From sequence record MZ443783.1: a DNA stretch of 64,000 nucleotides. One strand, 5' to 3'. This document shows positions 17,006 to 53,672 of the stretch, piece by piece (position 1 is the first letter of the stretch; each line of letters opens with the position of its first letter). The notes below the pieces were generated by a model. It saw nothing but the letters and a program-made list of their open reading frames with translations, made no database searches and was not told the origin of the DNA. Both the position numbers and the translations under genes were made by a program.

Positions 17006-17436
17006 TCACCTCTATCGGTTACCAACAAAGGACTGTCTGGAGTCTTGTGCGGCATAGCGAAGAAACTACCATGCTCATCACGATACACCAACAGACCTCC
17101 AGATGACCCTTCAATCGGGCAGGTAAAGTTAAATATCTTTTCAAGAGGCGGCATATAGCTAACAGACACGTCATTAAACGTGCACCACTTGGCAGACACT
17201 TCAATCAACGAACCAACGACGGTATCGGCAAGGCGCAGGTAAGACTGCTTGAAGTGGTAACTATGTTCGATAGGAGCCACACTATCAATCGTCAGCTCAT
17301 CACCGTACACAGCCTTATAAATTAGGCAGAAGCGGCGACGGCCACGAGGAGCATTCGGTATTTCATACAGTACATCATGTATGAGTGAAGAAACGTCCCC
17401 ACAGAGGACGTTTTTCTTGACCACCAGATTGATCAT
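17002..17436 (-). CDS. Hypothetical protein (144 aa)
   Basis: ATGA overlaps on both sides. Confidence 0.55.
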   Translation of the reverse strand: MINLVVKKNVLCGDVSSLIHDVLYEIPNAPRGRRRFCLIYKAVYGDELTIDSVAPIEHSYHFKQSYLRLADTVVGSLIEVSAKWCTFNDVSVSYMPPLEKIFNFTCPIEGSSGGLLVYRDEHGSFFAMPHKTPDSPLLVTDRGD

Positions 17437-33136: not shown

Positions 33137-33159
33137 CTCCTGAATAGTTCGACAATATG

Positions 33160-33166
33160 AAATTAG
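33160..33166 (-). promoter_or_regulatory. Class-2 promoter-like motif CTAATTT
   Basis: Intergenic, 23 nt upstream of 33136. Confidence 0.55.
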
Positions 33167-33177
33167 TATTTCGAGGG

Positions 33178-38845: not shown

Positions 38846-40726
38846 TTATTTCTTGGCTCGTAATCTTCTGGCCTTAGCTTCATCTCTGAGGTCAATCAAT
38901 GAATCCAGAGACTCTTCCATGCCGAGTTCGATAGCACGTTTGATGACAGCCTCTTTTATCACTTTCGAGGACTGACCTGACGCAATCAACAGATAGAGTC
39001 CAGAACGTGACATGTTGATCGCTTCTGGGTACAACTCTTCCGACGCTTGCTGCAACAGGAAGTCACCATCAAGTCGATGCAGGAGAATGCCGACCTCTTT
39101 CTGTTTGATTTTAGGCTTAGGATTGTTGATCAGTGCATCACGCATACGAGGGCGGAGGTCTAGTCGATCATCGAATGCAATCAGCTTATCTCCGTCCATG
39201 ATGCGAGTGATAACATCGTAGTAGCGAGGACTAAGCATGTCCTTGTGTCGTTCCAAACTCGCACGATTCGCAGCAGGGCACTTTGGATTCTGTGCAGCGA
39301 ATGCAGCGGCAGCAGGTAGGAGCACATACTCCGTGTACATGCTTCCTGTATAGCTTCCGAACTCCTCGTCCACATACTGCGTCTGCGTACCAGCACTGTT
39401 AATGCGCGAAGCGTTGTACCAGAACATTTGCTCTGGGTTCTTAGAGTATTTGGCGAATGACCAAATCTCCGAGAGCGCAGCAGGGAAGGCACCATCAACA
39501 GTCGCATCCGTATTGTCACGATACAGGTCCATCGAGCCTAAGTTAGCGTCCAGGAAACTATCACGCTGACTGTTAGGCAGGGCTTCGATAAACATCATAA
39601 GCGGTTGTGGTTTTCCTGACAGACTCTCCCACACCTTCGACATAACGTAATCGTCAAGCTCGAAGTTCTCAAACAACGTATCGAAGTAACGACGTAATTC
39701 GGTCAGGTGCCCGTTATTAATCAGCAGCGATACGCAACGACTATAGAAACGAGTCTGGCCCCATTTCTGTTTCGCCAGTGCAGTAGCAATCTGAGGGAAT
39801 CGGTCCATGTACTCCAGAGCTATATCTTCTGCTTCTTTGGAGCGACTAGCAATCAGACCCTGAATGAAAGCGTTAACATCACCACGCATCATGGGACCTT
39901 CGAGATCGTAGTTGAACTGACCCCTTGAATCAATATACAACTTACTGGCCATCTCGTACACGCCTTTACGTTCAGTAGTAGCGATAAACGGATTGACCTT
40001 CTCGTTCAACCAATCTTGCAGCGTGTGGATGAATGGCATCTTGTTGTCAGGATAAGCGTACTCGACCATGTACATGGCGTTCACTTTATCGGAGCCAACG
40101 AACTTATCAGCAGCTTTCGCCTTAGTGCGTTCAAAGAAAGGCTTGGCAAGACAACGACCAATAGGCTTGTTGATGTTCTTATCCTGATGGTCAATCAAGT
40201 AAGCAATCAGAGTACCATTTGCGATATCCTGTTTGATATACTTCTTGTTGCTGCCTGTTTTCAAATTCATGCAGCTCACCCAGCCACGATCGGTACTCAT
40301 ACCAGCGATATCATACGGGTGCATTGAGATACAGATCAGCTGGTGGTTACGCGTTGCGTTAACAAGTGACTTGCGCTTAGGGTCCGAATCAAACATCTTC
40401 TTGAGTTCGGGCAGCTTCGCAAGATACTTACCGATTTTAACAATACGTCCGTGCGAATCTTTACCTGTGCCTGCAACGTAATCCACCAGCACGATATTCT
40501 TTTCGGCAAGTGCGTCAACGATCTCAATAGGTGCCACAACGTTTTGTGCAACATTCTTGATCACGGTATCGGTCTTTGCGTCTATATAGATACGCATCGC
40601 CTTGTGACCTTTCTTGCCACTAATCTTTTCGAAGATACCCAACAGTGTGGGATTTGGCTTCCAGCCTTTTCTGTACTTGCGATACATTGAAGGAGGTAGC
40701 GCAGACAAACTAACCATTATTTCCAT
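38846..40726 (-). CDS. Hypothetical protein with MEIMVSLSA leader (626 aa; start revised)
   Basis: ATG 40726 with GAGA SD and class-2 motif upstream; the track start at 40915 overlaps the upstream gene and a terminator. Contains ISMHPYDIAGMSTDRGWVSCM. Confidence 0.65.
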   Translation of the reverse strand: MEIMVSLSALPPSMYRKYRKGWKPNPTLLGIFEKISGKKGHKAMRIYIDAKTDTVIKNVAQNVVAPIEIVDALAEKNIVLVDYVAGTGKDSHGRIVKIGKYLAKLPELKKMFDSDPKRKSLVNATRNHQLICISMHPYDIAGMSTDRGWVSCMNLKTGSNKKYIKQDIANGTLIAYLIDHQDKNINKPIGRCLAKPFFERTKAKAADKFVGSDKVNAMYMVEYAYPDNKMPFIHTLQDWLNEKVNPFIATTERKGVYEMASKLYIDSRGQFNYDLEGPMMRGDVNAFIQGLIASRSKEAEDIALEYMDRFPQIATALAKQKWGQTRFYSRCVSLLINNGHLTELRRYFDTLFENFELDDYVMSKVWESLSGKPQPLMMFIEALPNSQRDSFLDANLGSMDLYRDNTDATVDGAFPAALSEIWSFAKYSKNPEQMFWYNASRINSAGTQTQYVDEEFGSYTGSMYTEYVLLPAAAAFAAQNPKCPAANRASLERHKDMLSPRYYDVITRIMDGDKLIAFDDRLDLRPRMRDALINNPKPKIKQKEVGILLHRLDGDFLLQQASEELYPEAINMSRSGLYLLIASGQSSKVIKEAVIKRAIELGMEESLDSLIDLRDEAKARRLRAKK

Positions 40727-40755
40727 GATGTTTCTCGTTATTCGGGTGTTACGAA

Positions 40756-40762
40756 AAATTAG
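40756..40762 (-). promoter_or_regulatory. Class-2 promoter-like motif CTAATTT
   Basis: Intergenic, 29 nt upstream of 40726, after a hairpin. Confidence 0.55.
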
Positions 40763-40772
40763 CGTTGAAATG

Positions 40773-40798
40773 ACAAACGCCCCGTTAGGAGCGTTTGT
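40773..40798 (-). terminator. Terminator-like hairpin overlapping the SLOG stop codon
   Basis: ACAAACGCTCC-TAAC-GGGGCGTTTGT; weak U-tract. Confidence 0.55.
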
Positions 40799-41303
40799 AG
40801 CGTTCGTTGAATCTCTGCCAGTCTTTCCACCAGTACTCAACACGCTTACCATTTCGAAGCGCATAGTCGATGCAGTTCTGTGTACCAGAAGGTGCACCGC
40901 AACAAAGAGAAGCAAGACGGTCAGTGTTGTCCACCATGAAATGATTCCGCTTGTTTAGCGCAAACACCTCTTGTCCATCCATATGTACCCAGTCCTCTTT
41001 GGACGTCACGATATGGACTTCGTGGCTTTTATTCAACAGACCGTCAAGCTCAAACACACTGGACATATTCCAGCGGTTATTAAATCCGAGATAAGGGATA
41101 CATGACACAACACGGTGTCCTTGCTCGATAGCAGCATTGGCGATTGCCATGTCAAAGCCGAGAGCGCAACCAACCCAAATTTCAGTGTCGTTCTCGATAC
41201 GCAGCAATCTTCTATGAGCAAAAGTATAGAGGCGGCGTTTTGCCTCAGGGCCGAAGCCACCTAGATACTGTGGTCGATGGCCAGTGAAGGATAGTTTTTC
41301 CAT
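40785..41303 (-). CDS. SLOG-superfamily, YspA/DUF1273-like protein (172 aa)
   Basis: LSFTGHRP, GCALGFDM..A..A, KRNHFMVDNTDRL, SGTQNCIDYA. Confidence 0.8.
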   Translation of the reverse strand: MEKLSFTGHRPQYLGGFGPEAKRRLYTFAHRRLLRIENDTEIWVGCALGFDMAIANAAIEQGHRVVSCIPYLGFNNRWNMSSVFELDGLLNKSHEVHIVTSKEDWVHMDGQEVFALNKRNHFMVDNTDRLASLCCGAPSGTQNCIDYALRNGKRVEYWWKDWQRFNERYKRS

Positions 41304-41309
41304 GCTCTG

Positions 41310-41318
41310 TATTTACAG
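41310..41318 (-). promoter_or_regulatory. Class-1 promoter-like motif CTGTAAATA
   Basis: Exact copy, only 6 nt upstream of the ATG. Confidence 0.6.
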
Positions 41319-41324
41319 AACTTA

Positions 41325-42215
41325 TCAGACGGCGATATCAAACGATTTTATGTTGATACCAACATTGATTGGATATCGTTTCCCTGGAGTACACGCTGCG
41401 CCCGCATTAACTGAGAAGTCAGCACTGGTCAGCGTCAGCACTCTGTCACCTGCGATGAAAGCCATTAGATTAGGCTTCACCTGTTCGGTATCAGGATAAG
41501 GAGTCATTCCGCCTCTACCTAAGTACAGTTGTGGGCGTGTGCCTTTGAGGTCAGGAGGATCTGTTAGACCACCAGATCTACTGAATGAACGTACAGTCAG
41601 AATGAAGGGCTTGGCCATATATGTAGGAGTGTCTTTGTATTCCATACGACAATCCCATGTGGTCATAATCGATCCTATTGCAGCATTGGTTGAACCGAAG
41701 TTCATCTCCTTACCGAAAGCAACAGCACTCTGCGAAGTAAGGCTACACAATGTGGCGTCATATCGAGGACGACAGTTCATATTGTTGTTGGCGACTTGAC
41801 TGCGAACGTACATACCAAGATAACCATCACCACCGTTATACCCTTGAATGAATCTAGGCGTCCATTCAGGAATTATCCATGACATGCGATTGTTTTCTTC
41901 GCCTACTGAGTAATCCGTGTATGAGACAGGAGTACCAGATTTAGCCAACAGCAAATCATTGAATGTGTAGGGCATATCAGGAGCAGAGAACTTCAAGTTC
42001 GTGTAGTACCTGATATAAGTTTCGTTGCCTGCAACAATCGTTGTATTGCCGTCACTGCCTAAACAGCATCGCGCCTTTGATACGTTCGCAATCAAATCAG
42101 AAACAGAATTGAACGACGAAGGTACGCCAGAGTCTAACACGGTATCAAACAGAAATATCTCAGGAAGGTTTTGCGCTTCACTGAAATCAAAGTTGTTTCC
42201 ATTAACGTATTGCAT
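41325..42215 (-). CDS. 'MQY' paralogue family protein (296 aa), probably structural
   Basis: Shares the MQY start, KAR..LG and terminal PG(T/K)R with 42631..43491 and 46710..47594. Confidence 0.55.
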   Translation of the reverse strand: MQYVNGNNFDFSEAQNLPEIFLFDTVLDSGVPSSFNSVSDLIANVSKARCCLGSDGNTTIVAGNETYIRYYTNLKFSAPDMPYTFNDLLLAKSGTPVSYTDYSVGEENNRMSWIIPEWTPRFIQGYNGGDGYLGMYVRSQVANNNMNCRPRYDATLCSLTSQSAVAFGKEMNFGSTNAAIGSIMTTWDCRMEYKDTPTYMAKPFILTVRSFSRSGGLTDPPDLKGTRPQLYLGRGGMTPYPDTEQVKPNLMAFIAGDRVLTLTSADFSVNAGAACTPGKRYPINVGINIKSFDIAV

Positions 42216-42255
42216 GTGAGTCCTCCTTGAGACACGTCCTTGTGTCGCATAGCGA

Positions 42256-42621
42256 TTAAGCCACTACTTCAAGGTCATGATCACCAGAGTTCCACACAAG
42301 CTCACGAATGTTGCGTGGCATGATGATACAACCAGACGATGCAGTCCCTGGTGCTTTGATACTATCACCGTGCATCTGGAACGCAGAGCGGCCGAACATC
42401 ACGTTCTCTTTTGCTGGAGTCAAGTCCATTGCATACGGACCAGTCTTCTGACTTTGGCGTGGAGCATTCAGTGTGTAATGCCCTACAGGCAGAGGACCTA
42501 GGCCAACGATGTTCTGACTATCGTGTTTGTTCTTGTGCTCGCCTTTACCGGCATAACCAGTAGCGACAAGTTTATTAGCCGAGTTATACAGACGGCCTGT
42601 TGTTTGCTCATACTTCCACAT
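42256..42621 (-). CDS. Tlde1/DUF2778-like (L,D-transpeptidase fold) protein (121 aa)
   Basis: MWKYEQTTG.L, GYAG.G, GPLP.G.Y, GRSAFQMHGD......ASSGCII (His...SxGC catalytic signature). Confidence 0.8.
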   Translation of the reverse strand: MWKYEQTTGRLYNSANKLVATGYAGKGEHKNKHDSQNIVGLGPLPVGHYTLNAPRQSQKTGPYAMDLTPAKENVMFGRSAFQMHGDSIKAPGTASSGCIIMPRNIRELVWNSGDHDLEVVA

Positions 42622-42630
42622 ATACGCTCC

Positions 42631-43491
42631 TTATAGCTCTGTGTGGTTTTTGGGGAAATCAATGTACGGACGAGTGCCTGGGACCAAATCACTTTCGACC
42701 GTGAAGTCTATGTCTCTTTCGAATTTCCAGAACGTGTTAGAAGAAAGTGGAAAGAGTCCGAAATGAATGTCCACTGTCTCAGGCTCAAACAACATCTCTG
42801 GAGAGTAGAAGGAATCAGTGACTTTGTTGTTGCCCCACCTAAGGCCTTGACCAGAAGATGAGGTATTGTAGCGAGTAGCGAACATGCAATCAAGCATTGA
42901 GATCGCATCAGTCACTTCATATGAAGGGGTGACGTCGTAATTACCACTCCAGTTAAGTGTGGCGACGTAGCTAGATGAAGTCGGAGCTTTCCCTGATTCA
43001 CACAGATAGGCATCGAGATAGTAACCGTACCAACTCGCAGAGCTTTGTCTAGTGACAGAGAATGTTGGCATAGTCATTTGGGTATGACCTAAGCCTGGAT
43101 TAATGACGAAGTTACGTTTCAGTGGGTAGTAGTATATGGCAGCAGATATTGCATACTCAAATACTTCCCATTCGGTCGACTGCCCATCAGACGCGAGAGA
43201 AGCGTAGTTTTCATCAGTCCTGAGTGCAGCGCCAATGACCGTGTTATCTTCGGCAGCAACGACGGCCCGCGATGTAAAGGCGTTACGCATCTGGGTGAAG
43301 TAATACTTCTCGGCAGCCTGACCGCGAATTGGGTTTAGCTGGAATCCGCCTCCTAGTGTTGTTCTTGCTTTACGAAATATCTCTTCCATTGTGTCTTCGC
43401 TGATTTGAGGCAGGTTATCATCATCAGACAAAAACACGGTTGTTGGTTGAGATGGTTTGGTGATTGAAGCGAAACTGGATAAATATTGCAT
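42631..43491 (-). CDS. 'MQY' paralogue family protein (286 aa; start revised)
   Basis: MQYL start; KARTTLG, LNPIRGQ, LVPGTRP. Confidence 0.55.
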   Translation of the reverse strand: MQYLSSFASITKPSQPTTVFLSDDDNLPQISEDTMEEIFRKARTTLGGGFQLNPIRGQAAEKYYFTQMRNAFTSRAVVAAEDNTVIGAALRTDENYASLASDGQSTEWEVFEYAISAAIYYYPLKRNFVINPGLGHTQMTMPTFSVTRQSSASWYGYYLDAYLCESGKAPTSSSYVATLNWSGNYDVTPSYEVTDAISMLDCMFATRYNTSSSGQGLRWGNNKVTDSFYSPEMLFEPETVDIHFGLFPLSSNTFWKFERDIDFTVESDLVPGTRPYIDFPKNHTEL

Positions 43492-43533
43492 GTTATAAGC
43501 CTTGGTTTTTATTGTGGAACCACGGCATAGCAC

Positions 43534-43566
43534 AAAAGGGCCTACACCTTTCGATGCAAGCCCTTT
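43534..43566 (-). terminator. Intrinsic terminator
   Basis: GGGCTTGCATC-GAAA-GGTGTAGGCCC-TTTT (three G-U pairs, GNRA loop). Confidence 0.8.
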
Positions 43567-43571
43567 GGGTG

Positions 43572-43709
43572 TCAGACTATGATTGTCTTGATCACGTTAC
43601 GGTTCTTCTTTGGGTCGAACCATACTTCTTCGATAATCTTGCCCATGCCGAAATTGATCATCTGAACCGTACGGCGTCGAACGAGTTGCAGACGTTTAGA
43701 CTGGAACAT
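43572..43709 (-). CDS. Small basic protein (45 aa), absent from the ORF track
   Basis: AAGGAG SD; MFQSKRLQLVRRRTVQMINFGMGKIIEEVWFDPKKNRNVIKTIIV; fills the gap up to the terminator. Confidence 0.6.
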   Translation of the reverse strand: MFQSKRLQLVRRRTVQMINFGMGKIIEEVWFDPKKNRNVIKTIIV

Positions 43710-43711
43710 GA

Positions 43712-44221
43712 TTACTCCTTAATCATTTTGACACGCGTGTGGTCGAAGATGCCAAAGGTAGGAACATCATTATGCTCACCTTCGTTACCTTTGATTGAGT
43801 CATACCCAGCAAGTTTGAGTATCTTGCTGATCTCGGTATACTCGTCCCACCACATGTAGACTCGCTTATACTGCGATGCAGGTATAAGTTTGTCTAGCGC
43901 GTCTAACCTTTTAACGAGAGTCATCGCTTCATCTTTGCCAACCAGATGCAACTGGAAGGCTTCCATGATAAGATGCTTCACTCGTCTATGAATCTCAGCG
44001 AACTTTACTTCCGTCCACAGAGAACGGAATTTCAGGCTGGCGTATCGGCCTGGGTCCGCATGAAATTTGTAGAGGCGCCCATCCTCCGCATACTTCTCGG
44101 CATACGCACGATCAGGAGTTACCCAAGTCATGTGTTGCTTCTTAGCATGTTCATCTGACCAGTCTTCTGCAAGACCGCGATAGTAGATTGTGGGCGCACT
44201 CAGGCTGACAAAGATCTGCAA
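43712..44221 (-). CDS. ADP-ribosyltransferase-fold protein (ART-PolyVal-like) with MQIFVSLSA leader (169 aa)
   Basis: YYRGL...TWVTPDRAYAEKYA...RLYKF and LKLAGYDSIK....TFGIFD patterns. Confidence 0.6.
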   Translation of the reverse strand: MQIFVSLSAPTIYYRGLAEDWSDEHAKKQHMTWVTPDRAYAEKYAEDGRLYKFHADPGRYASLKFRSLWTEVKFAEIHRRVKHLIMEAFQLHLVGKDEAMTLVKRLDALDKLIPASQYKRVYMWWDEYTEISKILKLAGYDSIKGNEGEHNDVPTFGIFDHTRVKMIKE

Positions 44222-44224
44222 CTG

Positions 44225-45148
44225 TTACTTGCTCAGGCGTTTGAACGTAGCGCCCTTGTCGTTGTAGGTGATGCTGACAACGCCAGGAATTTCAAAGCCG
44301 TCTTTCTTACGAACAATCGGGATGTTTTTGTCTGCGAAGTGGTGACGCATTTCGGTAACAACTACACCAGCACCGTTACCGAGCGACTTACCTTCGGAGT
44401 TAGTGATTGTGCCGCTTGCTTTAGAGAAGTCTGCTTTAGCGCCGACAGTTCTCAGAATAGCCTTAGAGCGTTTCTCTACTTTATCACTCAGCTTCTTATC
44501 CGCGCCCGCTGCGGCTGGTTTACTTGGCTTTTTAGCGGCAGGAGCTTCTTTCGCTTTCTGCGTTTTCTTAACAGAAGCGCGAGGTCCCATGCCAGGTTTA
44601 GCCGTAGACGTCTTCTGACCGATAGCGTCAAACGCAGCTTCTTTCAGGAACTTCGGCTTGAAGGTACCACGCTTACCTGTAACGCCGAACTCAGTCAGCT
44701 TGGTAGCACGGATAGATTTCAGTGCCTTGTCAGCACCTACACCAGTTTTGATATCAGCAGCAGACAGAGGCAGATTCAGACCACCCAGACCGTGAGCTTT
44801 AGCAACCTTGTTCGCTTCCCGCAGAGCAGCCTTAGCCGTTTTGATTTCGGCAGTAGCTTTAGCCTTCTCAGTTTTACGAGTGGCCATCAGCTTGGTGCGC
44901 TTATCACCACGAGGCAGTTGGCGAGCCTTTGTCGAAGCAGTGTTGGATTTGATTGAGGCAGTAATGCCGGCAACAGCAGCAGTCTTAGCTTTTTTCAAAT
45001 GACCAACAACAGTCTGCAACTCTGCTTTCTTGGCAGAGTTGACTAGCAGCGTAGTTGCGCCACCAAACTTATGCACACGGTATGCCGGTTTCTTTGCAGC
45101 AGATTCTGACACCAGAGAGTCAGCGATATTAATACGAATGAGAGCCAT
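44225..45148 (-). CDS. Basic Lys/Ala-rich protein (307 aa; start revised to MALIRINIADS)
   Basis: AAGGAA SD before ATG 45148; KKTQKAKEAPAAKKPSKPAAAGADKK segment. Confidence 0.6.
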   Translation of the reverse strand: MALIRINIADSLVSESAAKKPAYRVHKFGGATTLLVNSAKKAELQTVVGHLKKAKTAAVAGITASIKSNTASTKARQLPRGDKRTKLMATRKTEKAKATAEIKTAKAALREANKVAKAHGLGGLNLPLSAADIKTGVGADKALKSIRATKLTEFGVTGKRGTFKPKFLKEAAFDAIGQKTSTAKPGMGPRASVKKTQKAKEAPAAKKPSKPAAAGADKKLSDKVEKRSKAILRTVGAKADFSKASGTITNSEGKSLGNGAGVVVTEMRHHFADKNIPIVRKKDGFEIPGVVSITYNDKGATFKRLSK

Positions 45149-45158
45149 TTTGTTTTCC

Positions 45159-45764
45159 TTATACCAGGGCGCGGCCCGGGATATCAAAATTTTTACCAGC
45201 GGAGTAATCACCCAGCGCTTGGTAGAGAGAGTTACGCAACATCTGTTCGATGATATCGGAGTTATGAGCCGATGCGTCTTTGAACGCAACTTCAATCGAA
45301 TCAGTTCTCGGATTCACTACAGCGTATCGCAGAGGGCAGATCGTTTGAGCTTCACACCAGGCATCAATACGCGGCTGCAAGTCAGGCGTGATTGGAATGC
45401 GGAAGTCAGTGAGAGCAAACACTACGCTTTGAATAGGCGGTGGTGCAGACAGCGAATTGTATTTACCTTTCGGGTCGAGTCGCTCCATGGCCATAGAGGC
45501 ATCATAGACAGACTGATAACCTTCACCAACGGTTTTGATATCAGCCAGCTTGAAGCTATGCGTTGACAAGCCTTTGCGAATCAGCTTGGCGATCTTGAGA
45601 TCGTAATCACCAGAATCGTCAGTAGCAAAGGCAACGAACGCGTAGAAGGAGATCCCATCAGTTTCGCGCAGCAGACGATGGTCCAACACACGAAAGCCCA
45701 CGACACTCGAAAGTGCCTGGGCTGTTACCTGAGGCCCCTTAGATAAGGAGACGAAGATTTGCAT
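45159..45764 (-). CDS. Hypothetical protein with MQIFVSLSK leader (201 aa)
   Basis: TAATG coupling; leader motif. Confidence 0.6.
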   Translation of the reverse strand: MQIFVSLSKGPQVTAQALSSVVGFRVLDHRLLRETDGISFYAFVAFATDDSGDYDLKIAKLIRKGLSTHSFKLADIKTVGEGYQSVYDASMAMERLDPKGKYNSLSAPPPIQSVVFALTDFRIPITPDLQPRIDAWCEAQTICPLRYAVVNPRTDSIEVAFKDASAHNSDIIEQMLRNSLYQALGDYSAGKNFDIPGRALV

Positions 45765-46102
45765 TAACGCAGAGTCTTCAACGCCTGTTTAGCTTTCGCC
45801 AAATCAGTGAAGTATTTAGCGTCGTCATCGAACTCTGGTTCCATGCGAATCTCGATGCCAGATACGTTGAAGCCGATATCTTCATCTTCATCTTTGGTGA
45901 CCATGCCGAAACGAGCTACGCCTTCTTTGTAGCTAATGAAACGGAAGTCGATGATATCTTCCGGACCGCTCAAGTCAGACGGCATACCATCGTCCAGCAG
46001 ATCGAAGAACTCTTTCTTCGTCAGCTTAGTGAACACGCTTGCCATGGCGTTGGCAGAAGTAGACGCTACAGATTCGTCGAGATTCAGTTTGATAAGAGTC
46101 AT
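45764..46102 (-). CDS. Acidic hypothetical protein (112 aa)
   Basis: MTLIKLNLDESVASTSA N-terminus parallels that of 44225..45148. Confidence 0.6.
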   Translation of the reverse strand: MTLIKLNLDESVASTSANAMASVFTKLTKKEFFDLLDDGMPSDLSGPEDIIDFRFISYKEGVARFGMVTKDEDEDIGFNVSGIEIRMEPEFDDDAKYFTDLAKAKQALKTLR

Positions 46103-46104
46103 AG

Positions 46105-46674
46105 TTAAATTCCAACCTGTTTAGTGATTGTGATAACACGCTGGTACCAACCATAAATGTTATCTTCCTGGGTTTCATCTGCCTTAGCGATGTTCTTCAA
46201 CTTCGCAATACGACAGCCGTTGTAGGCATAAGCCAATACTTTGATATCGCGTACCTTGACATAGGCGTCAAGTGCAGCCAGTGTCTTAGGACCGATATTT
46301 GCAGCAGGAGCAAAGTCAGGATAGAGTTTGCCGCGCTGGTTCAGGATATTCAACTGGTCTTGCAGTTCAGCAATCGCAGCTGGTGGTCCTGAGTTAACTG
46401 CATAGTCAAATACCCACAGAGCCAGTTCTTGGCTGTACTTAGCAAGCTGATCGCATTTGCAGAAGTCCCAGAAATTAGCGCTGTAGATAGCGTATGCGAT
46501 TTCGTACGGCAGATTTTGCATATCGCCTTTATAGCCATATGCACGAGCATTCTTCTCCGTGACACCCCAACGTGTAGGGCCACCACGATCCGCCGCGCGA
46601 TTTGTATACTTCTCACCACCTTCTCGGTCGATGACCTCGGCAATGGCTTTCTTACGAAACGTCATAGCGTCCAT
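46105..46674 (-). CDS. Glycoside hydrolase family 108 lysozyme (endolysin) with C-terminal PG-binding region (189 aa; start revised)
   Basis: REGGEKYTNRAADRGGPTRWGVT (EGGY-like catalytic motif), FDYAVNSGP, YGWYQR; GAGGA SD. Confidence 0.88.
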   Translation of the reverse strand: MDAMTFRKKAIAEVIDREGGEKYTNRAADRGGPTRWGVTEKNARAYGYKGDMQNLPYEIAYAIYSANFWDFCKCDQLAKYSQELALWVFDYAVNSGPPAAIAELQDQLNILNQRGKLYPDFAPAANIGPKTLAALDAYVKVRDIKVLAYAYNGCRIAKLKNIAKADETQEDNIYGWYQRVITITKQVGI

Positions 46675-46700
46675 AATGAGTCCTCTTGATCGACATATCA

Positions 46701-46707
46701 AAATTAT
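46701..46707 (-). promoter_or_regulatory. Class-2 promoter-like motif variant (ATAATTT)
   Basis: Intergenic, 26 nt upstream of the endolysin start. Confidence 0.4.
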
Positions 46708-46709
46708 CG

Positions 46710-47594
46710 TCAGATGGACAATCTCGTAGCTTTGAACTTAAATGCAGGGCGTGTTCCTGGAATGAGTTCAGCGGGCAGATCATAGTCATTGTCGTCCAGC
46801 ATAACCAACGTATTTAATGCTTTCCAGTAGAAAAGACCGAACGCCAGATTGACTGTTTCGTCCGCAGCTTCTCTCGGTGCCCAGAAGATACCATCATCTC
46901 TGTACGACAGGTGCATGTCCGCGAAGTTACCGCCGTCCGTACCAACAGAGCAGGCTTTCATGGCCATAGCATATTGGAAATTAACGTCAGTAGTCGTGTA
47001 CACATCGACAGGCGCAATGGGAGGAAAACCATATCCTGTTTTAAACTGGTCTGAATACGTCGGTGCCGTGGTGACGACTGAGCCATTATATGTTTTCAAG
47101 TGAAGCGTACTAGGGAAGCGTCCGAACTGACTGCTTGTACCAGACGTTGCGAGAGCAGCACACTTAGGGAAGTGCATCTTAACGTCAAACGGACAGTTGA
47201 AGATTACGGTACCTTTCCGAATTGTATAATCAGGGAAATACTCGGCTCGGGTTGCATCGTAACTCTGATAGTCCACGACTCCTGGTTCCGATACATGCGG
47301 CGAAAAGCCTACGGTGTTCTCCTGCATTATGATATCGTAGGTTGCGGGCGCCCAGTTCTTATCTGAGGCATACTTTGCGAAGGTTGGGAAGTATTTGTTT
47401 CCGTGCTGCCCTGCGACTGGATTGAGCTTACTGCCTACACCAAGAACCGAGCGAGCCTTATGTGCATTCTGTTTCGCAAATGTCATATCTCGCATTTGAA
47501 TTTTGGTGATGCCGTCTCTTGCATCAAAGAAAAGAACGTTAGGCATGTTCGTTTCTTTCGAAGCCAATCCAAAGAGTGTTGCTATGTATTGCAT
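46710..47594 (-). CDS. 'MQY' paralogue family protein (294 aa)
   Basis: MQYI start; KARSVLG, LNPVAGQ, LIPGTRP. Confidence 0.55.
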   Translation of the reverse strand: MQYIATLFGLASKETNMPNVLFFDARDGITKIQMRDMTFAKQNAHKARSVLGVGSKLNPVAGQHGNKYFPTFAKYASDKNWAPATYDIIMQENTVGFSPHVSEPGVVDYQSYDATRAEYFPDYTIRKGTVIFNCPFDVKMHFPKCAALATSGTSSQFGRFPSTLHLKTYNGSVVTTAPTYSDQFKTGYGFPPIAPVDVYTTTDVNFQYAMAMKACSVGTDGGNFADMHLSYRDDGIFWAPREAADETVNLAFGLFYWKALNTLVMLDDNDYDLPAELIPGTRPAFKFKATRLSI

Positions 47595-47642
47595 TGTGTA
47601 TCACCTCAATGGTCTGTCGAAGGTACTACGCGCTTGTGCCTA

Positions 47643-47649
47643 AAATTAG
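47643..47649 (-). promoter_or_regulatory. Class-2 promoter-like motif CTAATTT
   Basis: Intergenic, after a terminator, 48 nt upstream of 47594. Confidence 0.55.
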
Positions 47650-47662
47650 CTCCAAGATCGAC

Positions 47663-47682
47663 AAAAGGGGCCGAAGCCCCTT
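47663..47682 (-). terminator. Intrinsic terminator
   Basis: AAGGGGC-TTCG-GCCCCTT-TT. Confidence 0.85.
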
Positions 47683-48022
47683 AGAATGTCCAACGAGTAG
47701 CCCAAGCGATTAAGCCTGAGATAATACCGATGTGTGCCAGATAACCGTACTGCAACACATAGCCTCTGACATAGTGCTTCATGCCGCCCTCATACGCACC
47801 ATCATACACGGCAGAGATCATCGTGAACGACATAACGTAGGTGAACACATGCCACGTTGTCATCTCCATCACTTCGTTGCAGAACACTATTAGGAATAAT
47901 GAAACTGCCATGATGTACACTGTGCGTTTGGTCTCGGTTAGATTGATACCAAGCACAACAGGACGCATCAAGAAGGATGCGAATATCGAAACCAGCATTA
48001 GCGTTTCATAGTCGGCTGACAT
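47681..48022 (-). CDS. Small membrane protein with several hydrophobic segments (113 aa)
   Basis: Three to four hydrophobic stretches; holin role possible but not demonstrated. Confidence 0.5.
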   Translation of the reverse strand: MSADYETLMLVSIFASFLMRPVVLGINLTETKRTVYIMAVSLFLIVFCNEVMEMTTWHVFTYVMSFTMISAVYDGAYEGGMKHYVRGYVLQYGYLAHIGIISGLIAWATRWTF

Positions 48023-48327
48023 GCTTCGTCTACCTGTTCAGGAGTGATGTGTGCTTTTCTACGCAGGTCGAGCGCCAGTTGTGCTTTACGTCCAATGCGA
48101 GCATACGACTCAAGATCATCGTCGGAGTAACCGCTCATGCTTTCGCGTACATGAGACAGCTCGGCCATTTGGCGTGGACTCAGTTCGTTCGAACGCGCAT
48201 AGGCAGTCGCATGATCAATGTTACCTACATTAAAGCCTGCACAGCGATTCCAGATAGGCTCGGCATTAGGGTCCGTCTGCACCATCAACGTACCGTGACG
48301 ATCAACGTCATGAATATTACGACTCAT
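47998..48327 (-). CDS. Hypothetical protein (109 aa; start revised to MSRNIHD)
   Basis: GGGAG SD before ATG 48327. Confidence 0.55.
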   Translation of the reverse strand: MSRNIHDVDRHGTLMVQTDPNAEPIWNRCAGFNVGNIDHATAYARSNELSPRQMAELSHVRESMSGYSDDDLESYARIGRKAQLALDLRRKAHITPEQVDEACQPTMKR

Positions 48328-48328
48328 A

Positions 48329-49042
48329 TCAAACTCCCTGGTTAGAAACGTAGGTGTCGGTGATGTTCGCAGTCTTCTCCACGTTACCACGAATGTACCC
48401 GAGTTCAAACACCTGCACGTTATGTTTGACGACTGCTTCACCTGCTGTCTCACAGGCACCGCTGTGGAGATCAAGGAAGGCCTGACACAAACGATCTGCA
48501 ACAGGCTTTGCCAAAATCTTCATCAGTGTATGCCTCTGCATAGCAGTGAGCTTGATAGGCATCGCGTCAATCTCGCGTTCGATATTCTTACGACCACCGT
48601 TAAATATCCACTTACAGATTGTCGCAGTCAAAGGCTTCTGGTGAGTCTTCGACGGCAATGTGTAGATGAATGTCATCAGGCTATAGAACAGGCTGCCGTC
48701 GATAGCGCGTTTCTTGAGGTCATCAAGGTACTGACCAACAGGCTGCAACTTACCGCGCTGAGGCTGCATCTCATCCAGCTTGAGATCAACGTCTAGGCCA
48801 AAACGCTTCAACGACTCGGAGTGCCCAAACACATAGACGATATGATTAGGCATATCACGAATAGCAACAGCGTTACGGCTATACTCCCGTGCACCAACGA
48901 CAAACAAATACTTGCGATATTTCTTCGACGGGTCAATGGTGCCACCGATAGGAACAAACGTTACTCGGTCGGCATGACCTTTCTTTTTCAGCCAGCCCAT
49001 AACCTGCTCTGGGCTTTGACGTGTTACCGCGATTACAGGCAT
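48329..49042 (-). CDS. Hypothetical protein (237 aa)
   Basis: GGAG SD; in the SbcC operon. Confidence 0.55.
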   Translation of the reverse strand: MPVIAVTRQSPEQVMGWLKKKGHADRVTFVPIGGTIDPSKKYRKYLFVVGAREYSRNAVAIRDMPNHIVYVFGHSESLKRFGLDVDLKLDEMQPQRGKLQPVGQYLDDLKKRAIDGSLFYSLMTFIYTLPSKTHQKPLTATICKWIFNGGRKNIEREIDAMPIKLTAMQRHTLMKILAKPVADRLCQAFLDLHSGACETAGEAVVKHNVQVFELGYIRGNVEKTANITDTYVSNQGV

Positions 49043-49044
49043 CG

Positions 49045-49368
49045 TTACTCCACAGTGTTGAGCGCTTTAGCCGTGTACTCACGCAGAGTACGTTCGATGT
49101 TTTCTGCCAGAGTAGGATGACAGATGAGCTGGTGGTCTTTCATGAAGACACGCAGCGACGGACGCATTACTTTACGCGTCTGCATCTTCATGCGCAGCGC
49201 ACGGTGCATAGCGGTAGCGTAATATTCTTCCTCACGCTCCTCCAGGCAGTTCGCATTTGCCACTACTTCGTACTTGGCGAAGATGTGTGGATTACGATTG
49301 ATGTACGCCGGGTCCATAGGCACACTATTCTTTTCGTGATCACGATTGAGTTGACCGAAGATCATCAT
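49045..49368 (-). CDS. Hypothetical protein (107 aa)
   Basis: ATGA overlap with the SbcC stop. Confidence 0.55.
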   Translation of the reverse strand: MMIFGQLNRDHEKNSVPMDPAYINRNPHIFAKYEVVANANCLEEREEEYYATAMHRALRMKMQTRKVMRPSLRVFMKDHQLICHPTLAENIERTLREYTAKALNTVE

Positions 49369-51698
49369 ATCACCTTACGGGACAGACTGGACGTTCCACC
49401 TTTCTTGGTGACTGTCCATTGATTGTTAGAGAAGTGCTCGACGTCATTTGGAGTTATCCAGTAGATGTTCGGGATAATCTGTTTGAGAATCGGCAGGAAG
49501 TTTTCAACGATGTGATTACTCACCGCAGGGCTACAACTGTTATCAGGCTCATCGAGGATGATAAAGTTCGTGCGACGGTTCGCTGGGATAAACGGCATGA
49601 TCGCTACAGCGAACAGCAGTCTAAAGCAGTTAGTCTCCGCGCCGCTCATGATACCAATGTCCGTAGTCTTTTTCGAGATCATACGAGTCACGGTAGCACC
49701 AACACCTTGCTTGGTCGTAAACAGTTCGAATCGCATAGGCTCAGGGAAGACGAGGCCAGAGTATTCGTTCAGCTTGGCTTCGATTTGTTTCAATCGACTC
49801 TCAACGGCTTTCAATTTGAGCGCGTTGTTGCTGTATGCCTTATACAAGACTTCGAACACCTTGCGCTTATCAATCAACGGCTGGAGCTTGGCTAGCTTGG
49901 TACGGAGTTCACGTAATGTTTCCTCGTAGTGCTCATGCTCCTGCACACGCATCTGGATGCCTTGCGCCTTGCGCTCTTTCTTGTCGATATCGTTACGCAG
50001 AGATTCAGCTTCCTGTTCAATCTTTTTGTAACGTCCGTCAAGAATGTAGAACGGATCTTCTGGCTCACCGATAGCTTTCATTGCAGCGCGAAGGTCTTTC
50101 AGAATCTCAAGGTCCTTGATTCGGTTCTTGATTGTCTTACGGGCTTTCTTAGGCTGCTTGACCGCTTTAGGTTTCTTGAGCGCTGCCTTACGTGCTTGCA
50201 GCTTCTCCAGCTTCTTGGCCTGTTCGAATTGTTCTTCGATCTGGTCAAGCTGTTTGCCTGCTGTCTTGAGTTTCTTCTCAAGCGCTTTGCGATCATGCTT
50301 CGGCTTCTTCACTTTGTCTGACTGCAACGCGGTGAGTTCGGCATTCAGCTTGTGATAGTCGATATCAGTAATGCACTCGTCAATGATAGCCTGCGCTTTG
50401 GTTGCTGCGCGTGACATGGCTTTGATATCAACATCCTGACCGCAAGTAGGACAGGAGTTACCATCGTGCTCATGCTCCTCAAAAGCACGATACGCCTGAA
50501 CTATTGCTTTGGATTCTGCTCTGGCATCCTGTGCCTCTTCCTGAGTTCGTTTAGGACTTTTGAGCTTAGACAACCGTTTGGTGAGCTTTTCACAGGCTTC
50601 TCGCCAGTCGTCGTATTCTTCTTGTTGCTCATCTACCTTCTCCAGTAGCTCTTGGAGTTCTTCTTCCTCTTTAACCAGCTTGCCGTGTTTCTTACGCAAC
50701 TTCTTGTTATCGAGATCAGCAACATCACCAAGTGCCTTGATGCGTTTCTTAACTTCGGCCAGCTCTGCTTCGTATTCCTCCAGAGCTTCCACGTAATCTT
50801 CGTAACGGTCATGCTCGATGAGCTGGCCCCGCAGGTCATTCAGTTCGCCTTTGAGATCAGTAGTCTCAATGCCAAGAGTGTCCAGTTGGTGTTTCAGCTT
50901 CTCGTACTTACGCGCATTGCTACGCGCCGTACTGAGTTCGACCAGTTTACCATTCAGGTCATTACGTCTGGCTTTCATCTTATCGAGATGCTTGATGATA
51001 GCAGCCAGAGTATTCTTTTCTTCGGCGTGAATGTTCAGCGCGTTTTGTTTACGCTGCGTCACGTCGAACATATCAGCCAGGCCTTTCGATTCTGTCTCGG
51101 CGTCTTTGGCCAAGTCCAGTTTCTTCTTCAACGCCATACGAATGTTGTCGAAGATATCGAGGTTGAATAACGAGGTCAGATACTTGAGGCGATCAGCAGG
51201 TGCAGCGCGTTGGAACGGATGCGAGATCTGCGACTGAATATAACAGTAGCTGTAGAACTCATCTTTGGACAGAGGCCAGTGCTTCTGTACCCAACCACGA
51301 GCAACGTCCTGACGACCAACCTTCTGGTCTTCACCATTGAAGAACACTTGATACTTCGTGGCCGACTGTACGATACGCACAATGCCACCGAGCGGAGATT
51401 CCCACGACAGGTCTATTGAACTACCTTTGCCGAGCATGTTCCCCTTGTCTTTCTTTTTCATCGCAAGAGGGTCAGCTTCATACAGCAAGGTAGGTATCGC
51501 AGCGAACAGCATACTTTTGCCTACGCCGTTCGTGTTGTCTTTAACGTTCGTACTATCGAGGTTCTTTCCGCAGATTGTTGCGAAGCCCTCGTTGTCAAGG
51601 CCGTCAATATCGAGTTCCTTATACACGCCAACGTCGCGCAAGTGAATCTCTTTCAGGCCGATACCGTGCTGCTGTTTCTGCTTTTGCTTCTTGGCCAT
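49365..51698 (-). CDS. sbcC: SbcC/Rad50-like SMC ATPase (777 aa)
   Basis: Walker A NGVGKS, Q-loop YIQSQ, central zinc hook CPTCGQ in coiled coil, signature MSGAE, Walker B IILDEPD. Confidence 0.9.
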   Translation of the reverse strand: MAKKQKQKQQHGIGLKEIHLRDVGVYKELDIDGLDNEGFATICGKNLDSTNVKDNTNGVGKSMLFAAIPTLLYEADPLAMKKKDKGNMLGKGSSIDLSWESPLGGIVRIVQSATKYQVFFNGEDQKVGRQDVARGWVQKHWPLSKDEFYSYCYIQSQISHPFQRAAPADRLKYLTSLFNLDIFDNIRMALKKKLDLAKDAETESKGLADMFDVTQRKQNALNIHAEEKNTLAAIIKHLDKMKARRNDLNGKLVELSTARSNARKYEKLKHQLDTLGIETTDLKGELNDLRGQLIEHDRYEDYVEALEEYEAELAEVKKRIKALGDVADLDNKKLRKKHGKLVKEEEELQELLEKVDEQQEEYDDWREACEKLTKRLSKLKSPKRTQEEAQDARAESKAIVQAYRAFEEHEHDGNSCPTCGQDVDIKAMSRAATKAQAIIDECITDIDYHKLNAELTALQSDKVKKPKHDRKALEKKLKTAGKQLDQIEEQFEQAKKLEKLQARKAALKKPKAVKQPKKARKTIKNRIKDLEILKDLRAAMKAIGEPEDPFYILDGRYKKIEQEAESLRNDIDKKERKAQGIQMRVQEHEHYEETLRELRTKLAKLQPLIDKRKVFEVLYKAYSNNALKLKAVESRLKQIEAKLNEYSGLVFPEPMRFELFTTKQGVGATVTRMISKKTTDIGIMSGAETNCFRLLFAVAIMPFIPANRRTNFIILDEPDNSCSPAVSNHIVENFLPILKQIIPNIYWITPNDVEHFSNNQWTVTKKGGTSSLSRKVI

Positions 51699-51910
51699 TA
51701 GAAATACTCGACAGTTTCTTCCTGTATCAGACCTTTACCATGCGTCTGCTCAAACACTTCGATTTCGTCCTGCGTGTACTCTGAGGACGATTCGGCGATC
51801 ACATCATACGAGATGGATTCTTCGCGTGTGTCAGAAATGATTGGCTTGAGAATACGCCACAGAGGCAGAGCGATTGTTTCGCGCTTCAAGATTTTTGCTA
51901 CGGCAACCAT
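51698..51910 (-). CDS. Hypothetical protein (70 aa; start revised to MVAVAK)
   Basis: TAATG coupling on both sides. Confidence 0.5.
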   Translation of the reverse strand: MVAVAKILKRETIALPLWRILKPIISDTREESISYDVIAESSSEYTQDEIEVFEQTHGKGLIQEETVEYF

Positions 51911-52125
51911 TAGTGAAATACTCCAGCTGGTTCTACCCACAGTTCAGGCGCGTTGTACTGCGCACGTAATTCGTTCAGGCGATCATCAGTCAGTGGACGA
52001 TCGGAGACTAAGATGCACTGCGGCACCTTTTCTTCTTTACCTGTTACAGGATGAATGTCGCGGTCGTGGCGCATGACATTCCAACGTTTTGATACGGAGA
52101 TATTGATGAAGGTATTGCGTTCCAT
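51910..52125 (-). CDS. Hypothetical protein (71 aa; start revised to MERNTF)
   Basis: First gene after the terminator plus class-1 motif. Confidence 0.5.
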   Translation of the reverse strand: MERNTFINISVSKRWNVMRHDRDIHPVTGKEEKVPQCILVSDRPLTDDRLNELRAQYNAPELWVEPAGVFH

Positions 52126-52163
52126 AGTCAAGGACCTATGTATAGTGTATGAATGATACTCGC

Positions 52164-52172
52164 TATTTACAG
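52164..52172 (-). promoter_or_regulatory. Class-1 promoter-like motif CTGTAAATA
   Basis: Exact copy heading the SbcC operon. Confidence 0.65.
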
Positions 52173-52189
52173 TTTTTGAGGATATAGAC

Positions 52190-52219
52190 AAAAAGAAGGG
52201 CCACCGTTAGGCAGCCCCT
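52190..52219 (-). terminator. Intrinsic terminator
   Basis: GGGGCTGCC-TAAC-GGTGGCCCT-TCTTTTT. Confidence 0.75.
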
Positions 52220-52491
52220 GCGAATACTTTGCGCACCCCGTTATCCAGATAGTGATCTGCATAGAAGGGTCCATTTTCGTTTTCAATACCAATGCGCCTA
52301 CATAGCTGACGACGTAAGCGTCTAGGCCATACCAGCTCATCTTCAATCAGATGGATGACGGCAGGTAGTGCTTCCAGTTGCGTCATAGTCAGGTCACGAA
52401 TCTTGTCGTCAATGCGACACAGCTCCGCATAGTCCTGTTCAGGTGTTGGTACGTTGCGCACAGGCTTAGAAAGATCTACGGTGAGTTCCAT
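52207..52491 (-). CDS. Hypothetical protein (94 aa)
   Basis: TGATG coupling; MELTVDLSK start resembles the leader motif. Confidence 0.55.
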   Translation of the reverse strand: MELTVDLSKPVRNVPTPEQDYAELCRIDDKIRDLTMTQLEALPAVIHLIEDELVWPRRLRRQLCRRIGIENENGPFYADHYLDNGVRKVFAGAA

Positions 52492-52937
52492 CAGTATCTC
52501 CGCGGCTTCTTAGGTTTCTTGATAGTGGATTTAGGACGCTTGATTGCTCTCAGAGCTTTACGCGCCTCAATAATCTGCTTGGACAATTCAGAGCGACGAG
52601 CCTTAATCTGGTCAGTGTCCTGCTCAGTGCCTTTGAGTTTATCAAGGCGATTCCATTCTTTGACCAGACGATCAACGACGTTGGCACGAGACACACGCTG
52701 CTGATTGGTACGCACAATGTCCTGCTGCGTCTTCACCGAATCGCGTGTACGATTAACTTCTTCACGCGCTGACTTAACGCCTTTGGTATCACCCTCAGAT
52801 TGTTTGTCGTTCAGCTTCTTACGCGCTAACTGCGAGCGGCGTTGTGCTCCCTTGAGATCATCTTTCGAATTGTCCAAGGAGACTTGAGTATCTTCGAGCG
52901 GGCTTGTACGCGCACTCAAACTGATAAGTATCTTCAT
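52491..52937 (-). CDS. Basic coiled-coil protein with MKILISLSA leader (148 aa)
   Basis: GAGGT SD; heptad-rich; KKPKKPRR tail. Confidence 0.6.
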   Translation of the reverse strand: MKILISLSARTSPLEDTQVSLDNSKDDLKGAQRRSQLARKKLNDKQSEGDTKGVKSAREEVNRTRDSVKTQQDIVRTNQQRVSRANVVDRLVKEWNRLDKLKGTEQDTDQIKARRSELSKQIIEARKALRAIKRPKSTIKKPKKPRRY

Positions 52938-52951
52938 AAGACCTCAAAACG

Positions 52952-52976
52952 AAAAAGGGCGACCCGAAGGCCACCC
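52952..52976 (-). terminator. Intrinsic terminator
   Basis: GGGTGGCC-TTCG-GGTCGCCC-TTTTT. Confidence 0.8.
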
Positions 52977-53068
52977 TGTGTAGAATGGCGCGCTATGCAC
53001 CCGACTGGTTAGGTCTACTACGATTATTTAACCTCGCAGTAGTGAGCGAGGAGATGGGGATCACCTCC

Positions 53069-53605
53069 TCATGCGGATTGAAGTTGAAGAATTTCTTCGT
53101 CTTCGATATCCGCGCCAGACCACGAACGAATCACGGATGCGTTTCCACGATTGCCTGTCAGCATCATCTTAACTGATGGCTTGGCATCGCGTTCTGCGTA
53201 ATAGTCGGCGAGAGCTTTCTCTGTACCGAACCATAAAATGGAGTGACCACCCTTAGGGCAGATCAAGAATTGAGTAGGACGTTGTGGAACGTTCAACGTC
53301 AGATAGAAGTCACCAGCGCCAGTAGGACCAAGCATTGGCATAGGCTTCATGATCTGCTGAAAGTCTCCAGCATCTTTAAGACGTGTATCGCCCAGCAACC
53401 AGATAGCACCTTCTTCGCCTTCACGCACAGCACTCAATGTGCCTTTACGTGTTGTGATAGAGCCAAAGGTGTCTTGGTCAAAACGGGCTAGACCGAAGAT
53501 GAGTGATGCGAGTTTCTTCAGGTCAGGGGTCGTGCATGGACTATCAATTTTGGCCATGCCCTCGGACCCTACTGTAATCTTCGAGAGTGATACAAAGATT
53601 TCCAT
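53069..53605 (-). CDS. Hypothetical protein with MEIFVSLSK leader (178 aa)
   Basis: GGAAG SD; class-2 motif upstream. Confidence 0.6.
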   Translation of the reverse strand: MEIFVSLSKITVGSEGMAKIDSPCTTPDLKKLASLIFGLARFDQDTFGSITTRKGTLSAVREGEEGAIWLLGDTRLKDAGDFQQIMKPMPMLGPTGAGDFYLTLNVPQRPTQFLICPKGGHSILWFGTEKALADYYAERDAKPSVKMMLTGNRGNASVIRSWSGADIEDEEILQLQSA

Positions 53606-53641
53606 ATTGTCTTCCAGAGCTGTATGATTAATTGTGATATA

Positions 53642-53648
53642 AAATTAG
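53642..53648 (-). promoter_or_regulatory. Class-2 promoter-like motif CTAATTT
   Basis: Intergenic, after a terminator, 36 nt upstream of 53605. Confidence 0.55.
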
Positions 53649-53672
53649 TGTTTGATCAGACAATTCTGAAAC

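Follow-up and report, generated by a model that had tools for sequence, protein, structure and literature searches.

In bacteriophage T4, an N-terminal capsid-targeting sequence (CTS) of about 10 residues with a consensus ending in Leu/Ile-x-Glu is carried by IPI-III, Alt, gp67 and gp68, and the protease concerned is gp21. The internal proteins of T4 are diverse and fast-evolving, and share only this short peptide, which is removed by the prohead protease (PMC3012670). In phiKZ-like giants such as SPN3US, whose heads take up many additional proteins, head and ejection proteins are also processed by a protease, and a short motif of this processing is found in the capsid protein as well (PMC5694885, PMC10052503). 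Here we describe a short N-terminal peptide, M-x-I-x-[VI]-S-L-S-[AK] (hereafter the tag), that begins five minus-strand open reading frames (ORFs) in a 64,000-nucleotide stretch (the window) of the Erwinia phage pEa_SNUABM_28 (Alexandravirus; MZ443783.1, 267,143 bp); the 15.2 kb with these ORFs match that phage with 100% identity, and window coordinates are record coordinates minus 124,000. An earlier note on this DNA had read the peptide as a portable address tag and had drawn its parallels from T4 internal proteins and phiKZ-like heads. By its taxonomy, however, the phage is a jumbo myovirus of the Lu11/PaBG group, outside the phiKZ-like phages. It is related to Alexandra, AD1, Y3, Yoloswag and JA29, all of them jumbo myoviruses of Erwinia, Dickeya or Yersinia; the Pseudomonas phages Lu11 and PaBG are remoter, and the whole set is named the 'Lupandier' group (PMC7412058). 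To the reading that the tag is a T4-like capsid-targeting propeptide, ending in a site for the phage's own head protease, we assign about an even chance.

The five tagged genes, all on the minus strand, are _00193 (38846-40726; 626 amino acids; MEIMVSLSA encoded at 40700-40726), _00199 (43712-44221; 169 amino acids; a TTG start followed by QIFVSLSA, encoded at 44195-44221), _00201 (45159-45764; 201 amino acids; MQIFVSLSK at 45738-45764), _00213 (52491-52937; 148 amino acids, basic and highly charged; MKILISLSA at 52911-52937; PHROG 28362) and _00214 (53069-53605; 178 amino acids; MEIFVSLSK at 53579-53605). The deposited GenBank coding sequences (CDSs) have identical starts for all five, in agreement with the earlier note, whose size range of 148-626 amino acids is also correct. 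The motif is concentrated at N-termini beyond chance: the regular expression [EQK]I.[VI]SLS[AK] has five matches in the six-frame translation of the window, every one of them immediately behind a start codon. A degenerate DNA pattern of the tag gave seven matches against 0.32 expected, a number reached in none of 100 shuffles. Scanning the rest of the genome, parts of it with DNA patterns, revealed three more strict copies, on the Nudix hydrolase _00126 (MMINVSLSA), the 159-amino-acid acidic protein _00237 (MEIYVSLSQ) and the 109-amino-acid, Glu-rich protein _00246 (MEMMVSLSH), in addition to degenerate ones. The count of five given previously is therefore right for the window, and the genome-wide set is larger: eight strict copies, each directly after a start codon, on proteins without a common family in Pfam or PHROGs. 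A position-specific scoring matrix (PSSM) gives the true tags 24-28 bits, and no 8-mer away from a start more than 17 bits. The genome-wide PSSM scan is limited by noise below about 17 bits, and a clear tag on orthologs was required before a degenerate one was accepted. The wider core, hydrophobic-x-S-x-S, falls inside the first 12 residues of 11 of the 110 annotated proteins (3.0 expected, p=2e-4). The tag is real, statistically solid and evolutionarily conserved.

Position 2 of the tag is E, Q, K or M, and S6, L7 and S8 are invariant. The codons used are varied, with three different ones for I3 and four each for S6, L7 and S8, both serine codon families being present, and 85 of the 113 pairs of codons for the same residue differ. 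Because synonymous codons differ to this extent, selection acts on the peptide and not on the DNA, as had been proposed from the five window sequences; the tag is under amino-acid-level selection. These codon differences also rule out a DNA-level repeat. A broader alternative takes the tag as a nucleic-acid or translation feature or an evolutionary leftover, in which 5' ends were spread by recombination or tune initiation and the peptide itself is idle. Several tagged genes have no obvious Shine-Dalgarno sequence and two overlap an upstream stop codon, as this alternative would allow. However, the tags average 53% nucleotide identity against 67% amino-acid identity, their invariant Ser and Leu use both codon families, the DNA upstream of tagged starts has no sequence in common, and orthologs of no more than about 50% identity still have the tag; such an explanation is hardly credible.

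The relatives of pEa_SNUABM_28 have 5-10 tagged proteins each, on overlapping but differing sets of proteins, and both conservation and turnover of the tag could be traced in Y3, Yoloswag, JA29 and Lu11. Y3 carries the tag on five genes in the syntenic region, Yoloswag also has five tagged proteins, two of which are untagged in pEa_SNUABM_28, and JA29 has seven strict and several variant tags within 13 kb. Orthologs of _00213 begin MKILISLSA (Y3_205), MEILISLSQ (Yoloswag_198) and MQVLISLSK (JA29 gp191); those of _00214 begin MEIFVSLSK (Y3_208) and MQIVFSLSK (JA29 gp193), and the Yoloswag ortholog is untagged. The Y3 ortholog of _00201, a gene whose start overlaps the stop of its upstream neighbour (TAATG), begins MKIFVSLAA, and orthologs or paralogs of _00193 begin MEIVVSLSA (Yoloswag) and MEIEVSLSA and MKTVVSISA (JA29). 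The tag is kept in nine homologs of _00199, with variants such as MKIVISLST and MQIRISLSA. The degenerate tag MELTVDLSK of _00212 (52207-52491, minus strand; 94 amino acids) has clearly tagged orthologs in Yoloswag_197 (MEIVISFSA) and JA29 gp190 (MQIFVSLSN). As judged from these comparisons, the tag is gained and lost among orthologs.

The Nudix hydrolase shows this turnover in relation to a known fold. Among 34 homologs, the close ones carry a tag and a basic linker (MKINVSLSA, MKLMISTSA, MEIFVSTSS, MLISISSAP and MEITVSLASGP), and the PaBG-like homologs are untagged, beginning directly at the fold. Tag-like starts do remain in PaBG, for example MHTSLSA on topoisomerase I. The AlphaFold2 (AF2) model of the tagged Nudix protein has a predicted local distance difference test (pLDDT) score of 87.7, with residues 1-11 below 50 and unstructured, and the fold starting from residue 18; on this model the tag is a disordered add-on outside the folded domain. 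Gain and loss among orthologs, together with the disordered position outside the Nudix fold, characterize the tag as a portable add-on. A short, exposed, disordered N-terminal peptide on unrelated proteins might be expected of an N-terminal degron, by which a host or phage protease would destroy late proteins at a set time, or of a peptide protecting against such destruction. We know of no N-terminal degron class that matches the tag, and its conservation over four genera, on proteins retained in other respects, speaks for a function rather than disposal. A degron would also leave the head-module motifs and late promoter described below unexplained, and we consider it very improbable.

A practical use of the tag is that it fixes doubtful gene starts. 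The start at 40726, which the earlier note had revised, is supported by the Yoloswag ortholog of _00193, which has a stop eight codons upstream of MEIVVSLSA, and by a promoter motif that falls within the longer ORF upstream of 40726. The TTG at 44221 is a second case, and the Y3 ortholog of _00199 starts with ATG. In the Yoloswag Nudix gene (NC_047815.1; L010:401-423), the annotated GTG start corresponds to Val5 of the tag. Translation from an ATG that lies in frame 12 nt upstream yields MEIIVSLSA, and the deposited gene thus probably lacks four codons at its 5' end. A 139-amino-acid cluster of the _00199 family (P0009) looks like a truncated gene call. Separately, a Salmonella enterica serovar Infantis assembly has a 267,225-bp contig encoding a capsid protein (88% identical) and a Nudix protein (81% identical, with the leader MIIDVALSASA), which suggests a related jumbo phage inside, or contaminating, that assembly.

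Searches of the tagged proteins against Pfam and PHROGs gave the Nudix assignment and otherwise lineage-specific families only. For _00193, no Pfam family was found and a PDB sequence search returned no meaningful match. The 169-residue _00199 has no Pfam, PHROG or PDB sequence match; its AF2 model is poor (pLDDT 57.7, residues 1-10 below 50), and the best Foldseek E-value is 1.3. The ADP-ribosyltransferase fold that had been suggested for a protein of this set was accordingly dropped, as none of these searches or the model supports it. Known classes of N-terminal peptide and short motif were also considered. Sec/Tat signals have a positive n-region, a hydrophobic core of at least about 7-15 residues and a small-x-small site; the leader here has just eight residues, 3-4 of them hydrophobic, often has Glu at position 2 and is predicted to be a disordered coil, and a Sec/Tat signal was rejected.

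The tag also has a connection with head maturation. The core common to the tag and head proteins is hydrophobic-x-S-x-S followed by A, S or K. In the 366-amino-acid capsid protein, the top match to the tag PSSM is ELVHSTSA (residues 62-69), at the putative propeptide junction. In all 31 capsid homologs of at least 56% identity, G-E-[LI]-V is followed at a distance of 3-7 residues by S-x-S, at approximately residues 62-69, in an otherwise variable linker, and remoter homologs often have SLSA[RS]EE at the junction. A predicted cut after S68 would remove 19% of the capsid chain; for PaBG, the capsid protein was reported to become lighter by about 20% during maturation (PMC7412058). The genes for the head protease and the major capsid protein have between them one for a 674-amino-acid protein (pEa_SNUABM_16 gp145; L012:23344-25368, minus strand), with counterparts at L019:7190-9178 in JA29 and at L021:5181-7556. 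This protein is labelled 'ATPase' in RefSeq and PHROGs and has no Pfam domain. It contains Cys-rich, zinc-ribbon-like segments as well as long Asp/Glu repeats with DFDSES[SK] at intervals. Its overall appearance is that of a scaffold or of a protein of the internal core. S-x-S occurs 23 times in the Alexandravirus protein (8.4 expected), 27 times in JA29 (11.3 expected) and 26 times in a metagenomic relative (14.9 expected), each with p<=0.0005 by shuffling; among the Alexandravirus sites are the conserved DPSLVSLSR and AASLSKA as well as the repeated DFDSES[SK]. MDQSIRSESF is the N-terminus of the 259-amino-acid head maturation protease. In PaBG, the scaffold-like protein has seven S-x-S against 5.3 expected, that is, no enrichment, the Nudix protein is untagged and the capsid linker has no S-x-S. 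In the metagenomic relative, tags have S-T-S-A or S-Q-S-A, and the capsid junction has S-V-S-A. Co-variation of the residue between the two serines, tag against capsid junction, was considered and rejected, for tags have Leu and the capsid site has T, Q or E. From these matches we infer that the head maturation protease recognizes hydrophobic-x-S-x-S with a small residue or Lys behind it.

A second, longer leader ends in the same way. Its consensus over 16-17 residues is M-x-[LI]-I-[KR]-[LI]-N-[LI]-x-[ED]-S-[LV]-x-S-[ET]-S-A, closing with the hydrophobic-x-S-x-S-A core of the tag. In the window it begins two minus-strand genes: _00200 (44225-45148), whose Lys/Ala-rich, basic product of 307 amino acids starts with the 17-residue leader MALIRINIADSLVSESA (45098-45148), and _00202 (45764-46102), whose acidic product of 112 amino acids starts with MTLIKLNLDESVASTSA (46052-46102). 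Y3_196 begins MTVIKLNLKDAVPSESS, and the long leader is also found on Y3_187, Y3_194, JA29 gp182 and JA29 gp183. Three consecutive PaBG genes have similar starts, namely MRIKINLL..., MHIKINMN... and VRIKIMLESTSA.

The promoters point in the same direction as the head-protein motifs. The class-2 (late, virion-type) motif RCTAATTT occurs nine times in the window against 3.2 expected, always on the coding strand. Sheath, PAAR, tail and connector-region genes lie behind it, as does the GH108 lysin gene in Y3. As stated in the earlier note, two of the five tagged genes lie directly behind it: ACRCTAATTTT is found as ACGCTAATTTT (40755-40765, minus strand) 29 nt before the _00193 start, and as ACACTAATTTT (53641-53651, minus strand) 36 nt before the _00214 start. 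A class-2-like motif, GCTAATTT (47643-47650, minus strand), heads the operon _00204 to _00198, which holds the tagged genes _00201 and _00199 as well as the long-leader genes _00202 and _00200, and the operon with the tagged Nudix gene is likewise behind a class-2 motif. This common upstream motif indicates that the tagged genes are co-regulated with virion genes. A terminator-like hairpin (52956-52977, minus strand) separates _00214 from _00213. Replication genes use a different motif, TGTAAATA, in place of class 2. The tcTGTAAATA motif is present ten times in the window against 1.5 expected, always on the coding strand, as ten minus-strand sites across 12801-60116; the clamp-loader, Mre11-like, YpsA-like and ligase genes lie behind it, and a motif of this type is annotated in Lu11 as a 'putative middle/late promoter'. 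Sigma-70-type promoters are not enriched (14 against 20 expected). The phage encodes a sigma factor, and phage-specific promoters are in use, which sets it apart from phiKZ-like phages.

Under the capsid-targeting reading, the tagged proteins would be synthesized late and recruited into the assembling prohead core through the strand-like peptide, for which either the scaffold/protease core or the inner face of the capsid would be the docking place. The octapeptide would be clipped after the second Ser once the protease fires, and the mature cargo, including the Nudix hydrolase, low-complexity proteins of basic or acidic character and several others whose fold is unknown, would be kept in the head with the DNA and enter the next host cell together with it. 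Packaging, cleavage after S8 and ejection are thus what the sequences lead us to infer for the tagged proteins. The portable address tag of the earlier note stands as a peptide module on unrelated proteins that is gained and lost, lies outside the Nudix fold, follows a late promoter and shares its core with the capsid, scaffold-like protein and protease, as would be expected of a T4-like signal for targeting and processing; the ADP-ribosyltransferase in its cargo does not. A variant of the proposal, rather doubtful in our estimate and still worth stating, is that the octapeptide is a programmable cargo-loading signal mimicking the capsid propeptide junction, which would dock as a pseudo-substrate on the protease/scaffold core, or in an encapsulin-like manner on the HK97-fold shell, and be released by one cut.

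The same S-x-S core, common to the putative head-protease substrates, would also be expected if the tag were a processing site only, cut by the head protease, by a KMPT-N/HExxH metallopeptidase or by another peptidase for maturation, activation or timing, with no routing to the capsid. The phage has several further peptidase genes, and the tag is very short. However, removal of eight disordered residues has no obvious activating effect on folds as unlike as Nudix and low-complexity acidic proteins, the strictly N-terminal placement of the site, behind a conserved hydrophobic strand, suggests docking too, and the association with late promoters fits assembly. We therefore regard processing alone as doubtful.

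The genes around the tagged ones supply the material for another explanation. A clamp-loader gene is flanked by two tagged genes. A Tlde1-domain protein (of the type VI secretion system (T6SS) L,D-transpeptidase-like effector family) and a GH108/PG_binding_3 lysin are encoded at 42256-42621 and 46105-46674 (minus strand), between tagged genes of the late operons, and PAAR and VgrG3-like_C tail parts are encoded elsewhere in the genome. The tag might be a docking peptide for a partner outside the head, for instance the sliding clamp of the phage, a chaperone used in common, or a T6SS-like tail spike or tube. In favour of this stand the two tagged genes beside the clamp-loader gene, the interleaving with peptidoglycan enzymes, the PAAR and VgrG3-like components of the tail, a tagged KMPT-N protein whose gene lies between the tail-tube paralogs, and the strand-like character of the peptide. 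Beta-clamp-binding motifs, however, have a conserved Gln followed by Leu-x-Leu-(x)-Phe/Leu spacing. The tag has E, Q, K or M at position 2, its hydrophobic spacing is different with S6-L7-S8 invariant, and its variants, MLISISSAP and MEIAVASEP among them, depart from that consensus; a clamp-binding motif was rejected. Gene position is, moreover, a poor guide to where a protein goes, and docking outside the head leaves the motif matches in the capsid, scaffold-like protein and protease unexplained. We judge this explanation unlikely.

Several other genes of these regions deserve mention in their own right. Three paralogs of about 290-300 amino acids (41325-42215, 42631-43491 and 46710-47594, minus strand) start MQY... 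and have [IV]-[FL]-[LF]-FD near residue 20; two such proteins are present in each of Y3 and Yoloswag (MQF..., MQL...), and no family match was found for them. Between one of these paralogs and _00193, a gene at 40785-41303 (minus strand) is labelled 'GTP-binding domain' by RefSeq and, for Y3 and Yoloswag, 'putative ssDNA binding protein'; its match to the YpsA SLOG family is borderline, at 27.6 bits with a cut-off of 27.7. Three KMPT-N (PF20294) proteins are encoded at L012:25446-26579, 32696-34558 and 16848-17522 (minus strand), one of them fused to an HExxH metallopeptidase beside the head protease. Two KMPT-N proteins have tag-like starts (MILSVSAS and MLILLSESA), and the copy in the tail cluster starts MLFFVSVSA in JA29 and MHLFISTSA in the metagenomic relative. 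A literature search for KMPT-N gave no match.

Several observations weigh against the tag being a capsid-targeting propeptide. The assignment of its end as a head-protease site derives from motif matches, and the match of the tag to the capsid junction is weak when taken alone (7 bits, 4-5 of 8 residues). The head protease has no Pfam peptidase family and no meaningful PDB sequence match, only a lineage-specific PHROG, and because it belongs to no recognized Pfam peptidase family its specificity is not predictable. Co-variation between lineages is imperfect, extends over four lineages only, and PaBG keeps some tag-like starts. The Leu between the serines is near-invariant in Alexandravirus tags and variable in the capsid and scaffold sites, and hence the tag is constrained beyond a cleavage site; it probably also binds something. 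Tagged genes stand among replication and recombination genes, outside the head module, and the tagged KMPT-N-family gene stands between tail-tube genes. The 14 abundant virion bands of PaBG include no tagged protein, and the GenBank record of Y3 calls the tagged orthologs merely 'hypothetical protein'.

If the capsid-targeting reading is true, scanning N-termini would list the proteins injected with the DNA in Alexandravirus, Sasquatchvirus, Yoloswagvirus, Salmondvirus and many metagenomic relatives. Such proteins are likely to be early host-takeover and anti-defence factors, and about 80% of the genes in these genomes have no assigned function. The tag would be a second, independently evolved case of the T4 capsid-targeting principle, would point to a new cleavage specificity in a head protease outside known families, and would offer a nine-residue handle by which to package foreign proteins into a large capsid. 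If instead the cargo-loading variant is true, N-termini would disclose the complete ejected arsenal of a whole phage group, made up of a Nudix enzyme, basic proteins of DNA-binding-like type, acidic ones and others of unknown fold, and a class of prohead protease with small-x-small specificity would come to light.

Comparison with described systems places the tag closest to the T4 CTS. In both, a peptide at the extreme N-terminus is the sole common part of diverse proteins, the cargo (here a predicted one) includes small, highly charged proteins and enzymes, and the genes are scattered outside the head module; the end of the tag would, in addition, be a putative site for the phage's own protease. 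The two differ in that they have no sequence relationship, the tag ending in S-L-S-[A/K] with small residues at the putative site, in contrast to Glu at P1 in T4; the head protease here has no Pfam peptidase match and no match to the gp21 family, the phage is of the Lu11/PaBG jumbo group, and packaging and cleavage are predictions. SPN3US is likewise a jumbo myovirus in which a propeptide motif recurs in the capsid protein, but its motif ends in Glu and its propeptides are long and dissimilar, whereas here a near-identical octapeptide with no Glu at its end is reused. Encapsulin cargo-loading peptides, which are usually C-terminal and uncleaved and bind the shell protein directly, resemble the tag in being short, conserved, strand-like terminal peptides of small and hydrophobic residues on unrelated cargo, and in their HK97-fold shell; the tag, by contrast, is N-terminal, and its shell would be a phage capsid filled with DNA, for which both a protease and a scaffold are present. 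Ser-Lys dyad proteases (signal peptidase I, the SppA/lambda gpC-type S49 enzymes and birnavirus VP4) follow a small-x-small cleavage rule, and the putative site of the tag is small at P3, P1 and P1' in the same manner, although the phage protease has no detectable similarity to these families and the tag has no long hydrophobic core. Most likely the tag is an analogue of the T4 CTS that evolved independently, with a different putative cleavage specificity.

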